Assembly: GCF_000143415.4 (NCBI RefSeq)
Contig: NW_003314308.1
Span: forward strand, 434,001-498,000
Source of the DNA: Selaginella moellendorffii
Taxonomy: Eukaryota > Plantae > Lycopodiophyta
DNA length: 64,000 bases
Direction of reading: 5' to 3'
The position numbers and the translations under genes were made by a program. Shown here in pieces: positions 31,943 through 51,167 of this stretch. The notes under the pieces are model-generated. The model had not been told where the DNA came from, made no database searches, and worked only from the letters and a program-made list of their open reading frames with translations. How positions within the stretch are numbered: the stretch's first letter is position 1; each line of letters opens with the position of its first letter.

Positions 31943-32988
31943 ATGGCAGCCATGTTGTTCTTGTTCATGATCATGGTGGCAGCCGCAGCGCTATGGAAGA
32001 TGGTGTGTATCCGCAAGAGAGAAGAGAGGGCACGATTTCTAGCGTCGCTCCACCCCGTGAGAGACGCCCGCAAGATCTTGTGATACATGTACTCAGTGGA
32101 ATTCCCCTTCCTGTCGCAAAAGGCGCTCGAGTTTGGCACCATCCGCACGCTCGGCATCCCTGGGATCACAAATCTGCTCTTCAAGACCAAGTACGGCCTC
32201 AAGGATCCCCAGAAGCGCGCCGCCGAGACCAACATTCTGGTGAGCGAGATGATCCATCACCACGTCGACAGCGATCGCGGCTCGTACGCAGTGAGGAGAT
32301 TGAATGGAATCCACAGCAAGTTCAGGATCCCAAACGACCAATTCGCATACGTCCTCTCTCTCAACGTGATCAGCCCCATTGATTTCTCCGAGAGGTTTGG
32401 ATTCCGCAAGTGGACCGACAACGAGAAGCAGGCCGCCTATGTTGTGTGGCACGACGTGGGCGTGAGGATGGGCATCACAAACATCCCGGACAGCATCCCT
32501 GAGATGCGACAATACATTCGCGACTACGAGGCCAAGAACGCCATCTTCACGGACAAGAACAAGAGCATCATCCAGGATCTCAAGCATCTGGTGCTGGACG
32601 CGTTTCCTCGCCCCTTGCAGCCCCTGGTGGAACTGGGATCTGCGCACTCATCGATCCCACAATCAGGAGCGCAGTGGGATTGGAAAAGCCGCCCGTGATT
32701 GTGGAGTGGATCATCTTGGGTGCGTTCAAGCTCCTGGCTGGGAGCTGCGTGTCCGTGTTTATGCCTCCCACACGTGTAGGGGATGCCAAGGGCAGCATTG
32801 AGGTGGACTGGTGTCCCAATCCTGCTGCCAATCCGGAAGAGTACCGGCAGCTCAACGTGAATGTGTATCGGCCACCGGCATTTGAGAAAGGATACAAGTT
32901 GGCAGAGCTGGGAGCGCTGAAATCGGGCAAGCTTGGACCATACTACGATGGAGGATTGCGCTGCCCCTTCCAGCAAATGCATGCATAA
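31943..32988 (+). pseudogene. MpaB'/DUF2236-like oxygenase copy A (disrupted)
   Basis: TGG>TGA at 32081-32083 and a 1-nt frameshift near 32631 relative to the intact copies. Confidence 0.85.
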
Positions 32989-33599
32989 TACAATCGTCAC
33001 TACAAGACTAATAAACTTCCGCCAACCTCAACGTCTCACTCCCACAAATAGTGCTTGTTTTGTGTTTTTGTAAATTGGTAGAGGCGCCGGGCCGCGATCA
33101 GATCTGCGCGTTTCGCATCCTGTCGCCAATTTGGAGGGAATGCGCCTCGCAGCGATCGATCTAGAACAAGGCGTCACTCGCTAAGGCTGTTGCGGCAATG
33201 GTACGTTTGCTGCGATTGATTGGATTCCATCGCTTCCTGCTGGTCGGATTGACGGATTTCGAGGGGTGGAAGCTGTAGCTAGCAGATCCACGACTGGGAA
33301 AATTTCGAGCTGGTTGCGTGCTTGGATTAGCATTGGCTGCAAACGGCTAGAGCACCTTAACAGGCGAGCCACTGTCCGTTAAGAGCATGATAGTAGAAGA
33401 GCAACTTGATGTCTTTCTTTCCACAGGTGCCAAGTACAGAAATTTGAGGCAGCGAACTTGTCAAAAAACAGATAATTGCTGCAGGTGAATTCTCTGACTC
33501 TAGCCAAAAGTGTCAACCACGTCTATGTGTTCAACCAATATCAGGTTGCCACAAAATTGAGATAAGAACTTCATCAAATCTCGCACTCAATTTTGGAGG

Positions 33600-35480
33600 T
33601 CTTCACGGTTGAACCTTATTTGTAGGAATGTCGGGCCTCTCCTCTTTTCCATCCAAAGAATCACTGCTGTGAAACTGAGGTTCTCTCCCTCTCTAGGCTG
33701 ATCGTGAGCCTGGAGCAGCAAAGATGAGCTTTCATAACTTTCCAGTCCCCATCACCAATGTATCCCCATTGCCTAGCCAGTGCGCTATTCACCTTATATC
33801 CATTTTCATAGTGGATCAAACTAAATTGTTTCAGTTAAACCGCCAGATTTTCTCTCAGCTCCTTAACATCCTCACTGCTCGGTTAGAACATGCTCTTATG
33901 GTACAGCCTAATGAGGATAAGAAGATTACGTAGATCTCGTACAATCTGATAATTGCCATCTACTTCCTCAACCGATGCAAAAGCCATGCCACATAGAGCC
34001 ATATCGATTGTATCAGATCTTCGTCTTAAACTCGTTGAGTTGCAGTGCAGCATCCATTGTTTCAATACATACAGCACACTGCTTTCTACTATTTAATGCT
34101 GCTTCAGCTTCTATAATGGTCCTTGTAACCTTGTGTATGTCTGGTGCAGAAAGCTGAACAGCAACATAAGCTAGACTTGGTGCTATTTTGTCTGACCAAG
34201 TATCCTTGACCTTGTATGCTACCCATGATCAGCTTGAATGGGACCGCAAAGCATACGAGGCAAGCACGAGTTGTAGCACGGGCCAGTTCAAAGAATATCA
34301 CATAGCACATCAATTCATAGCCTTCCAGCATCTTAGCCAGTATTGCACCATGTGTTCGTGGTTATGCACATCCTCCAAGGGCGTTCCTTCCATTAGAACG
34401 TGAAAAAACTGTAGTAAGTCATGGAACCACTCCCACTGGAAAATCTTGCTTGCCATGAAATGTGTACTGATTGCTAAGTAGATGCCAAGAGTTTAAAGAT
34501 ACCTTAAAAGACAGCTAATTGGAGCATCCGGAGGTGTTGCTGGAATCGATCGCGATCGCTGGAAGCGCAGAGAAGAGATCGATCGCGTCAAGATATCAAT
34601 TCACATTGTGGCCAGTCATCCGCAAGAACAGGGTTTTTACGTCAATTCACGCATTTGCCCACGAAGGGCATCTTTCGGAGAAAGGAATCCATGTCCAAGC
34701 TCGACTGCGATGTCTATACGAGCAAGGAAATCTGGAGAGCACTGCACACTAAGATACAGCAATATGATAATTGAGTACACTAACTGGATGATTGATTAGA
34801 AGATTGATGATCGTATAGTACGCTAGCAAACCCGTACCTTCTACCCAGAGAAAAGTATACTGACTATCGAAGTATTTCATGTACTGGAAAACCCCAAGAG
34901 CCTGACGCTGTAAGTTGCTTCCGAATAACATCTTGTCGACCACCTGGAACATATGTTCAGCTTGTTCATGGTCTGCTCGCTGTGGATTTTCCTTGTTTCT
35001 CCATATCCTAAACACTTCATTTCTCCTAGCTATACTTACAAATATTGCAGATGTTAGAAGGATCCATAAGTCAAGTAAGAGATGACATCGAGGCAACCAC
35101 ATGTACATGAGGTACTCCCAGAACCGAGAACGGAGACGTAGCATTTGTGACTTGGTTTCGTTCTTACATCCACAAAAACGGATTGTAAGAGCCGCTAAGT
35201 AGCTGAGTAGGACAAGCTGTTGTCGGCTCTGTTCGCGTTTGAGACCACTTAAGGCAAGGAGCCCTGCTGCCTCAGTCAAACCCGTAGCAGTGAGGAGGTA
35301 TCTCCTTGCAATATTTTGAAGAAGTAGACCAGGACCTAAAGAGAAGACTCCCAACTGCAGATTGAAGTACCTTGCTAGCATTGTGCATATCAATGTCGTG
35401 CATCCTGCGACTATAAACTTATCCCCAAAACTCCCACTGAAACTCTGTTGTATGCTGAAGAAGATGAAAGATATGTCATG
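33600..35480 (-). pseudogene. Disrupted copy of the multi-TM CxxC gene, with a ~240-nt foreign insert (34457-34696); 5' end replaced by a CDC5 fragment
   Basis: Collinear with 24303-26056; multiple frameshifts. Confidence 0.85.
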
Positions 35481-49510: not shown

Positions 49511-50469
49511 CTCCAAAATTGAGTGCGAGATTTGATGAAGTTCTTATCTCAATTTTGTGGCAACCTGATATTGGTTGAACACATAGACGTGGTTGACACT
49601 TTTGGCTAGAGTCAGAGAATTCACCTGCAGCAATTATCTGTTTTTTGACAAGTTCGCTGCCTCAAATTTCTGTACTTGGCACCTGTGGAAAGAAAGACAT
49701 CAAGTTGCTCTTCTACTATCATGCTCTTAACGGACAGTGGCTCGCCTGTTAAGGTGCTCTAGCCGTTTGCAGCCAATGCTAATCCAAGCACGCAACCAGC
49801 TCGAAATTTTCCCAGTCGTGGATCTGCTAGCTACAGCTTCCACCCCTCGAAATCCGTCAATCCGACCAGCAGGAAGCGATGGAATCCAATCAATCGCAGC
49901 AAACGTACCATTGCCGCAACAGCCTTAGCGAGTGACGCCTTGTTCTAGATCGATCGCTGCGAGGCGCATTCCCTCCAAATTGGCGACAGGATGCGAAACG
50001 CGCAGATCTGATCGCGGCCCGGCGCCTCTACCAATTTACAAAAACACAAAACAAGCACTATTTGTGGGAGTGAGACGTTGAGGTTGGCGGAAGTTTATTA
50101 GTCTTGTAGTGACGATTGTATTATGCATGCATTTGCTGGAAGGGGCAGCGCAATCCTCCATCGTAGTATGGTCCAAGCTTGCCCGATTTCAGCGCTCCCA
50201 GCTCTGCCAACTTGTATCCTTTCTCAAATGCCGGTGGCCGATACACATTCACGTTGAGCTGCCGGTACTCTTCCGGATTGGCAGCAGGATTGGGACACCA
50301 GTCCACCTCAATGCTGCCCTTGGCATCCCCTACACGTGTGGGAGGCATAAACACGGACACGCAGCTCCCAGCCAGGAGCTTGAACGCACCCAAGATGATC
50401 CACTCCACAATCACGGGCGGCTTTTCCAATCCCACTGCGCTCCTGATTGTGGGATCGATGAGTGCGCAG
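48653..50469. repeat. Near-identical inverted repeat arm pairing with ~32640-34456
   Basis: Identical ORF pairs on opposite strands whose coordinates all sum to 83109 (33181/49928, 33724/49385, 34104/49005, 32988/50121). Confidence 0.92.
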
Positions 50470-51167
50470 ATCCCAGTCTCCACCAGGGGCTGCAAGGGGC
50501 GAGGAAACGCGTCCAGCACCAGATGCTTGAGATCCTGGATGATGCTCTTGTTCTTGTCCGTGAAGATGGCGTTCTTGGCCTCGTAGTCGCGAATGTATTG
50601 TCGCATCTCAGGGATGCTGTCCGGGATGTTTGTGATGCCCATCCTCACGCCCACGTCGTGCCACACAACATAGGCGGCCTGCTTCTCGTTGTCGGTCCAC
50701 TTGCGGAATCCAAACCTCTCGGAGAAATCAATGGGACTGATCACGTTGAGGGAGAGGACGTATGCGAATTGGTCGTTTGGGATCTTGAACTTGCTGTGGA
50801 TTCCATTCAATCTCCTCACCGCGTAAGAGCCGCGATCGCTGTCGACGTGGTGGTGGATCATCTCGCTCACCAGAATGTTGGTCTCGGCGGCGCGCTTCTG
50901 GGGATCCTTGAGGCCGTACTTGGTCTTGAAGAGCAGATTTGTGATCCCGGGGATGCCGAGCGTGCGGATGGTGCCAAACTCGAGCGCCTTTTGCGACAGG
51001 AAGGGGAATTCCACGGAGTACATGTACCACAAGATCTTGCGGGCGTCTCTCACGGGGTGGAGCGACGCTAGAAATCGTGCCCTCTCTTCTCTCTTGCGGA
51101 TACACACCATCTTCCATAGCGCTGCGGCTGTCACCATGATCACGAACAAGAGCAACATGGCTGCCAT
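50121..51167 (-). CDS. MpaB'/DUF2236-like oxygenase copy D, intact
   Basis: 348-aa ORF differing from copy B at only a few residues. Confidence 0.8.
   Translation of the reverse strand: MAAMLLLFVIMVTAAALWKMVCIRKREERARFLASLHPVRDARKILWYMYSVEFPFLSQKALEFGTIRTLGIPGITNLLFKTKYGLKDPQKRAAETNILVSEMIHHHVDSDRGSYAVRRLNGIHSKFKIPNDQFAYVLSLNVISPIDFSERFGFRKWTDNEKQAAYVVWHDVGVRMGITNIPDSIPEMRQYIRDYEAKNAIFTDKNKSIIQDLKHLVLDAFPRPLQPLVETGICALIDPTIRSAVGLEKPPVIVEWIILGAFKLLAGSCVSVFMPPTRVGDAKGSIEVDWCPNPAANPEEYRQLNVNVYRPPAFEKGYKLAELGALKSGKLGPYYDGGLRCPFQQMHA

Follow-up and report, generated by a model that had tools for sequence, protein, structure and literature searches.

Four copies of a single 1047-nt gene lie within a 64,000-nt stretch of the genome of the lycophyte Selaginella moellendorffii (contig NW_003314308.1, positions 434,001 to 498,000), which we refer to at its full length as the window and number from its first letter. 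The gene encodes a protein of 348 amino acids that belongs to the family PF09995, together with MpaB' from fungal mycophenolic acid synthesis, the bacterial trans-anethole oxygenase (TAO) and the latex-clearing protein (Lcp), a rubber oxygenase. A listing of open reading frames (ORFs) and a four-way DNA alignment give the following layout:

Copy A, 31943-32988, plus strand: pseudogene of an MpaB-type oxygenase, with W47* (TGG>TGA, codon 47) and then a 1-bp deletion at codon 230
Copy B, 36803-37849, plus strand: intact intronless ORF of 348 amino acids, PF09995, with a transmembrane anchor at residues 4-22 and the residues R92/T96/H124
Copy C, 42733-43779, minus strand: pseudogene with R189* (CGA>TGA, codon 189), full length apart from this stop
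Copy D, 50121-51167, minus strand: intact ORF of 348 amino acids

Among the four copies, 24 of the 1047 aligned columns are variable, and B and D differ at 11 sites, 4 of which are non-synonymous. Letters specific to copy B occur at 36809, 36824, 36931, 37537, 37585 and 37765, while the stop of C corresponds to 37367 in B coordinates and that of A lies at 32083. These results agree with a first-pass annotation, made from the letters of the window, that described four near-identical intronless copies of 348 codons with B and D intact and A and C independently stopped. Its view of a local amplification that left two separately broken copies is likewise borne out by the distinct lesions in A and C. 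The three features to which it drew attention are all present: a hydrophobic N-terminus, here followed by the basic segment RKREERAR, NGIH (which contains H124) and a C-terminal CPF. By exact look-up, B and D map to the 1.46-Mb scaffold GL377612.1 in the public plant assembly GCA_000143415.2, where B is neighboured by a Myb_Cef gene and a gene for a 486-amino-acid protein; therefore, both genes had already been called and machine-named there. The closest database proteins are S. moellendorffii LOC112349549 (92% identity) and a 'mycophenolic acid synthesis protein B-like' protein (68%).

The copies encode a eukaryote-type, membrane-anchored member of the MpaB/Lcp/TAO family, as is evident from both sequence and fold. 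B and D match the PF09995 profile (MPAB_Lcp_cat, DUF2236) with 44.8 and 44.1 bits, respectively, where the curated cut-off is 23 bits; the window proteins have no match in NCBIfam. The only solved relative found by sequence search is TAO (8s1j), which a profile built from 81 homologues reaches at E = 1.7e-18 with the motifs QKRxDDT and NxIH aligned. Sequence profiles of this kind do not by themselves reach Lcp. An AlphaFold (AF2) model computed from the 81-homologue alignment is all-alpha, with a predicted local distance difference test value (pLDDT) of 91 and a predicted template modelling score (pTM) of 0.89. When this model was used as the query for Foldseek, 8s1j was the top match (E = 3e-8, template modelling (TM) scores of 0.62/0.71) and LcpK30 came next (5o1m, TM 0.50). 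VIA-align gave a Z score of 24.8 for TAO 8s1j and 17.1/16.9 for Lcp (5o1l/5o1m), the latter over residues 37-329 only, with globins following at about 9. Globins at this level are to be expected from the globin core described for Lcp (PMC5522427). An all-alpha fold around a 3/3 globin core is a trait of Lcp and TAO alike.

The residues expected of a haem site are conserved as well. Arg164, Thr168 and His198 of Lcp are the defining residues of DUF2236, with the His serving as the proximal haem ligand and the Arg and Thr being essential on the distal side (PMC5522427). Across the 81 aligned sequences, R92 and H124 never vary, and at least 90% of rows keep T96. These three residues align with the Arg, Thr and His of TAO, whereas their correspondence with Lcp is one of spacing (R-x3-T-x27-H in the window protein versus R-x3-T-x29-H in Lcp) and not of superposition. 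The position of the distal Lys167 of Lcp is taken by Glu95 in the window protein and by Asp in most of its relatives, and with Glu95 at this position the haem would be five-coordinate. A strongly hydrophobic stretch at residues 4-22 (Kyte-Doolittle 19-residue mean of 2.48) precedes the basic segment RKREERAR, and AF2 models residues 2-35 as one long helix. Such an N-terminal anchor is found in 46 of the 81 rows of the eukaryote-type clade versus 1 of the 65 bacterial-type rows. Fungal MpaB' is bound to the endoplasmic reticulum (ER) (bioRxiv 10.1101/524025), and the anchor of the window protein would fit a similar location. The profile score, the modelled fold and the Arg/Thr/His pattern thus uphold the earlier assignment of these copies to an MpaB'/DUF2236/Lcp-like family with a transmembrane anchor and a conserved His.

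Comparison with the characterised members places the Selaginella protein within this family and apart from each of them. MpaB' of Penicillium brevicompactum, which cleaves the C=C bond of a farnesyl side chain (bioRxiv 10.1101/524025), is likewise a eukaryotic PF09995 protein with an N-terminal anchor and a single domain of about 350-420 amino acids. However, none of the mycophenolic acid cluster genes lies near the window copies, and a C-terminal tail with the ending CP[FL] is particular to the plant clade. The likeness to MpaB' is drawn here at the level of the family. TAO from Stenotrophomonas maltophilia is the closest solved structure, with a root-mean-square deviation of 3.2 Å over 283 residues and with KRxDDT and NxIH aligned, but it is a soluble bacterial enzyme that lacks a membrane anchor, shares 18-21% identity and acts on a propenylbenzene. 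LcpK30 (5o1l/5o1m) has the same globin-core fold and the same Arg-x3-Thr...His pattern, yet it is secreted by actinobacteria, carries additional domains at both its N- and C-terminus, uses Lys167 as a distal haem ligand and shares only 12-15% identity. The window protein is not an Lcp proper, given that it has Glu95 in place of Lys167, an anchor instead of a secretion signal, and 348 amino acids versus about 400. The proteins that it resembles in length, anchor and CP[FL] ending are those of other plants, namely LOC112349549, the 'mycophenolic acid synthesis protein B-like' protein, Ceratopteris KP509_24G042500-700, the Adiantum paralogues and Ginkgo Gb_25975, with which it forms a clade supported at 100/99. 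Identity to the window copies is 68-92% within Selaginella and 37-43% for the fern and Ginkgo proteins.

These plant relatives bear directly on the origin of the gene. An exhaustive phmmer search of 1.84 billion representatives gave 1222 matches. Among the matches listed, the best named ones after Selaginella are from the ferns Adiantum nelumboides and Ceratopteris richardii (37-43% identity), followed by chytrids and Chloroflexi metagenome-assembled genomes, and the best bacterial matches are approximately 35% identical. Further named homologues come from the zygnematophyte Netrium digitus, a pedinophyte, Myrmecia bisecta, Basidiobolus, Pharyngomonas, Hemiselmis and Phalansterium, and a fern-centred profile search added seven Adiantum paralogues and Ginkgo Gb_25975. 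No angiosperm homologue was recovered by phmmer, by two word-index searches (the second being the fern-centred one) or by Atlas searches, which were not exhaustive for angiosperms. The word-index searches were limited to 8000 candidates each, and as the first of them missed even the fern proteins, their negative outcome carries little weight. The Atlas searches returned large fungal clusters only, which speaks no more than weakly against a large conserved family in angiosperms. This pattern is consistent with the remark in the first-pass annotation that the family is not associated with flowering plants, and it suggests that the gene was lost in that lineage.

A maximum-likelihood tree of 31 rows (LG+C20+F+G4) gathers all named eukaryotes into one clade that is split from the named bacteria with support of 99/97. 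Within it, Selaginella, ferns and Ginkgo form one vascular-plant clade (100/99), in which Selaginella, the ferns, and Ginkgo plus one relative are each monophyletic. In the trees, the plant genes do not fall inside any bacterial or fungal clade. When all Viridiplantae are held together in a single clade, the tree is as good as the free tree (approximately unbiased (AU) test p = 0.51, log-likelihood difference of about 0). An arrangement that follows the species tree, with a euphyllophyte clade, is 4 log-likelihood units worse and is not rejected (AU p = 0.32).

Separately, one tree places a protein from Logan SRR28082851 (P0009) nearest to the vascular-plant clade among the rows outside it (96/65). 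Its last residues are GGCPFPK, with the CP[FL] motif that marks the C-terminus in the plant clade. This protein may come from a bryophyte or a streptophyte alga.

Gene structure provides a second line of evidence on descent. The four window copies and an inverted pair on scaffold GL377605.1 are intronless, whereas a 68% identical Selaginella paralogue (P0002) on GL377594.1 spans 1145 nt for 348 codons (L007:6001-7145) and contains a 98-nt intron. This intron reads GTAAGT...CAG and lies in phase 2 at the codon just before FGFR. A fern-like gene of the plant clade on metagenome contig ENA ERZ1034411 (L001:3103-4257) has a GTAAGT...TATAG intron just before YGYR, at the same site and in the same phase (phase 2, codon before [FY]G[FY]R). 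The fern genes also contain introns, with gene spans, the measure used here, exceeding the coding sequence (CDS) by 85 nt in Adiantum and by about 850 nt in Ceratopteris. Because site and phase are common to P0002 and the fern-like gene, we conclude that the ancestral plant gene carried this intron and that the intronless state of the window copies is secondary. Even though dS between copy B and the GL377605.1 copies is only 0.27, a comparison of B with its flanks (35803-38849) against both of them finds no homology beyond the ends of the CDS. Homology that stops at these points at such low divergence is a hint of spread via cDNA, and the intronless sub-family may have spread as retrocopies.

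The intact copies evolve as would be expected of functional genes. Nei-Gojobori ratios of non-synonymous to synonymous divergence (dN/dS) are 0.13-0.16 for the window copies versus the GL377605.1 copies (dS 0.27) and 0.16 for B versus D. Values of approximately 0.14 indicate purifying selection on a working protein. There is also a weak sign of transcription. When reads were aligned to positions 36500-38150, the transcript-like contigs of run X1 covered only 36739-37900, which corresponds to the CDS plus about 60 nt on each side; these contigs have the letters of copy D at every diagnostic site and do not carry the stop of copy C. Three raw RNA-seq runs, of each of which about 12% was read, yielded 2, 3 and 7 reads, and 4 of the 7 from X23 match at no less than 99% identity. 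Expression is therefore likely but low in the sampled runs.

Self-comparison of the window places the copies in a complex set of direct and inverted segmental duplications that extends from approximately 29.3 to 54.3 kb. These duplications also contain full or partial copies of a CDC5/Cef1-like gene (Myb and Myb_Cef domains) and of a pentatricopeptide repeat (PPR) gene. The features within this stretch, together with one that lies outside it, are as follows:

29618-31522, plus strand: CDC5/Cef1-like (Myb_Cef) copy at the left edge of the duplicated stretch, broken by an assembly gap at 31186-31448
35362-36135, plus strand: C-terminal fragment of a CDC5-like gene, immediately upstream of copy B
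38309-39769, plus strand: PPR gene, 486 amino acids, downstream of copy B
41862-42302, inverted relative to 38309-39769: truncated PPR copy that adjoins copy C
44253-46258, minus strand: degenerate CDC5-like copy beside copy C, with broken ORFs and 89-92% DNA identity to the other CDC5 copies
51749-54157, minus strand: CDC5/Cef1-like copy, an ORF of 802 amino acids with Myb and Myb_Cef domains, the inverted partner of 29324-31185
19295-20338, minus strand: partial UDP-glycosyltransferase (UGT) ORF with a UDPGT match in its C-terminal part only, about 11 kb outside the repeated stretch

Two inverted arms, 32632-34456 and 48653-50477, are 100% identical over 1825 nt, and the repeats that surround them are 96-98% identical; this identity could reflect recent gene conversion or an effect of assembly. 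A diverged copy of the spacer at 24138-27928 shares 82-95% identity with 33426-35479 and 46370-49683, so the duplication history reaches to the left of the four-copy stretch. Within this spacer copy lies an ORF of 614 amino acids (24303-26147, minus strand) that has no Pfam match. Two further long intronless PPR genes flank the duplicated region (21065-23623, minus strand, 852 amino acids; 56745-58664, plus strand, 639 amino acids), which makes this a PPR-rich neighbourhood.

The UGT had been put forward in the first-pass annotation as a possible partner of the oxygenase, and this suggestion finds no footing in the genomic context. The ORF is partial, sits well away from the repeats and has no UGT counterpart beside the family members on GL377605.1 or GL377594.1. 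The former locus has genes for a strictosidine-synthase-like protein and an alpha/beta-hydrolase as neighbours, and the latter a GDSL lipase gene and leucine-rich repeat kinase genes. Across the window and these two loci, nothing points to a conserved metabolic gene cluster. The UGT-like frame is split over the overlapping ORFs 19295-20338 and 20280-20771 (minus strand), and could be a frameshifted pseudogene or could contain a short intron.

Taken as a whole, we consider it probable that this is a plant gene inherited vertically from the ancestor of vascular plants, that it encodes a eukaryote-type anchored PF09995 oxygenase, and that it was lost in flowering plants and locally amplified in Selaginella. 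The protein would most likely reside in the ER membrane by means of one N-terminal helix, with its catalytic domain predicted to face the cytosol. A b-type haem would be held by His124, with Arg92 and Thr96 on the distal side, and the predicted reaction is an O2-dependent cleavage of a C=C bond in a lipophilic substrate, perhaps an isoprenoid or prenyl chain or a propenyl-phenol. The gene probably derives from an older eukaryotic gene, and appears to have been retained in lycophytes, ferns and at least Ginkgo and seemingly lost in flowering plants. Within Selaginella, secondary intron loss would have given rise to an intronless sub-lineage, which at this locus was presumably multiplied by segmental duplication along with its CDC5-like and PPR neighbours. 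The decay of two of the four copies since then would represent birth-and-death turnover.

It is important to note that several observations weigh against this interpretation. The free tree joins Selaginella to the ferns (98/91) and does not place it outside the euphyllophytes. Likewise, a plant clade placed beside the bacterial stem is not rejected (AU p = 0.54), as the backbone of the eukaryotes is a star, and therefore a very ancient transfer is formally possible. Organism names are attached to a minority of the 150 matches listed, and the absence from angiosperms and the status of bryophytes rest on non-exhaustive searches and are not proven. Support from RNA is thin, both because reads are few in the three raw runs and because the identification of X1 as an RNA run is a guess. 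Finally, haem binding, reaction and substrate are predicted from relatives as distant as TAO and Lcp.

Given these points, we have considered whether the gene entered the ancestor of vascular plants or streptophytes by an ancient transfer from a fungus, protist or bacterium, gaining its intron and descending vertically since. The star-like backbone and the tolerated placement beside bacteria would accommodate such an event, as would the patchy distribution in eukaryotes, the lack of an angiosperm match in the searches made, and the presence of chytrid sequences among the best non-plant matches. However, members occur in three classes of green algae and a single Viridiplantae clade explains the data equally well, the plant proteins have the N-terminal anchor that characterises the eukaryote-type clade, and they are not nested in any donor clade, such that we regard this alternative as quite unlikely. 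Horizontal gain of a microbial gene, amplified thereafter, was proposed in the first-pass annotation; as a recent transfer of an intronless gene into Selaginella, it is extremely improbable. It would account for the intronless state of the window copies and the GL377605.1 pair and for the fact that the family is best known from actinobacteria and fungi. Nevertheless, the nearest relatives outside Selaginella are those of ferns and Ginkgo in a strongly supported clade, a Selaginella paralogue shares a canonical intron with a fern-like gene, and even the best bacterial matches are distant. Furthermore, with homologues in ferns, Ginkgo and green algae and a species-tree arrangement that the AU test does not reject, the outcome is one that the first-pass annotation had itself named as refuting its idea, and horizontal acquisition of a microbial gene is not supported.

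Two other explanations concern function and copy number. The protein might not cleave alkenes at all, and might instead bind haem or lipid in a regulatory or structural capacity, for instance as a factor of lipid droplets or the ER, or act as a globin-like sensor. The globin core and its Z scores of about 9 to many globins point in this direction, as do the LdrE and LdrF proteins of Aspergillus oryzae, which contain DUF2236 and are lipid-droplet regulators (bioRxiv 10.1101/2022.11.24.517872), and the function of the plant members is only predicted. In contrast, the catalytic Arg, Thr and His of Lcp are conserved across the 81 sequences, and all three biochemically characterised relatives are oxygenases that cleave C=C bonds. 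We therefore consider a role other than alkene cleavage rather unlikely. The four-copy layout might also be partly an artefact of the 2011 draft, in which joined haplotypes or collapsed repeats could have raised a true copy number that is lower, for example two. The run of Ns at 31186-31448 and the identical inverted arms amid less similar repeats would fit such an origin, as would the inclusion of both haplotypes in the v1.0 assembly; part of the layout could therefore be assembly-made. Against this, the lesions are distinct, the copies diverge by 1-3%, and the flanks differ in that B adjoins a full PPR gene and C a truncated one. Moreover, duplicates that derive from haplotypes usually lie on separate scaffolds and not in inverted order, and inverted pairs also occur at the GL377605.1 locus. 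An artefact of this kind thus seems unlikely.

The present analysis disposes of an attractive but mistaken case for gene transfer. The microbial look of the gene arises only because actinobacteria and fungi are where the family has been studied, and because model flowering plants lack it. We found no study of plant members of PF09995, DUF2236 or MpaB in the literature; one preprint makes a passing reference to a Selaginella transcript similar to the S. moellendorffii gene. The locus belongs to a known enzyme family but to an uncharacterised plant lineage of it that occurs in lycophytes, ferns and Ginkgo, with a conserved predicted haem site, purifying selection and repeated expansion. In addition, the shared intron and the intronless daughters offer a compact and clear case in which an intron was lost before the gene was amplified by segmental duplication and in part decayed.

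A broader proposal, which we advance only tentatively, is that seed-free vascular plants and gymnosperms keep a lineage of haem-dependent alkene-cleaving dioxygenases that was lost in flowering plants and has no relation to the non-haem carotenoid cleavage dioxygenases. These enzymes, which are multi-copy in Selaginella and Adiantum, may act in the formation or breakdown of lineage-specific compounds, either prenylated or propenyl specialised metabolites or signals of an apocarotenoid-like kind. If the plant members do cleave C=C bonds as their relatives do, then plants would have a second way of producing cleavage products of isoprenoids or phenylpropenes, one that does not depend on the carotenoid cleavage dioxygenases.

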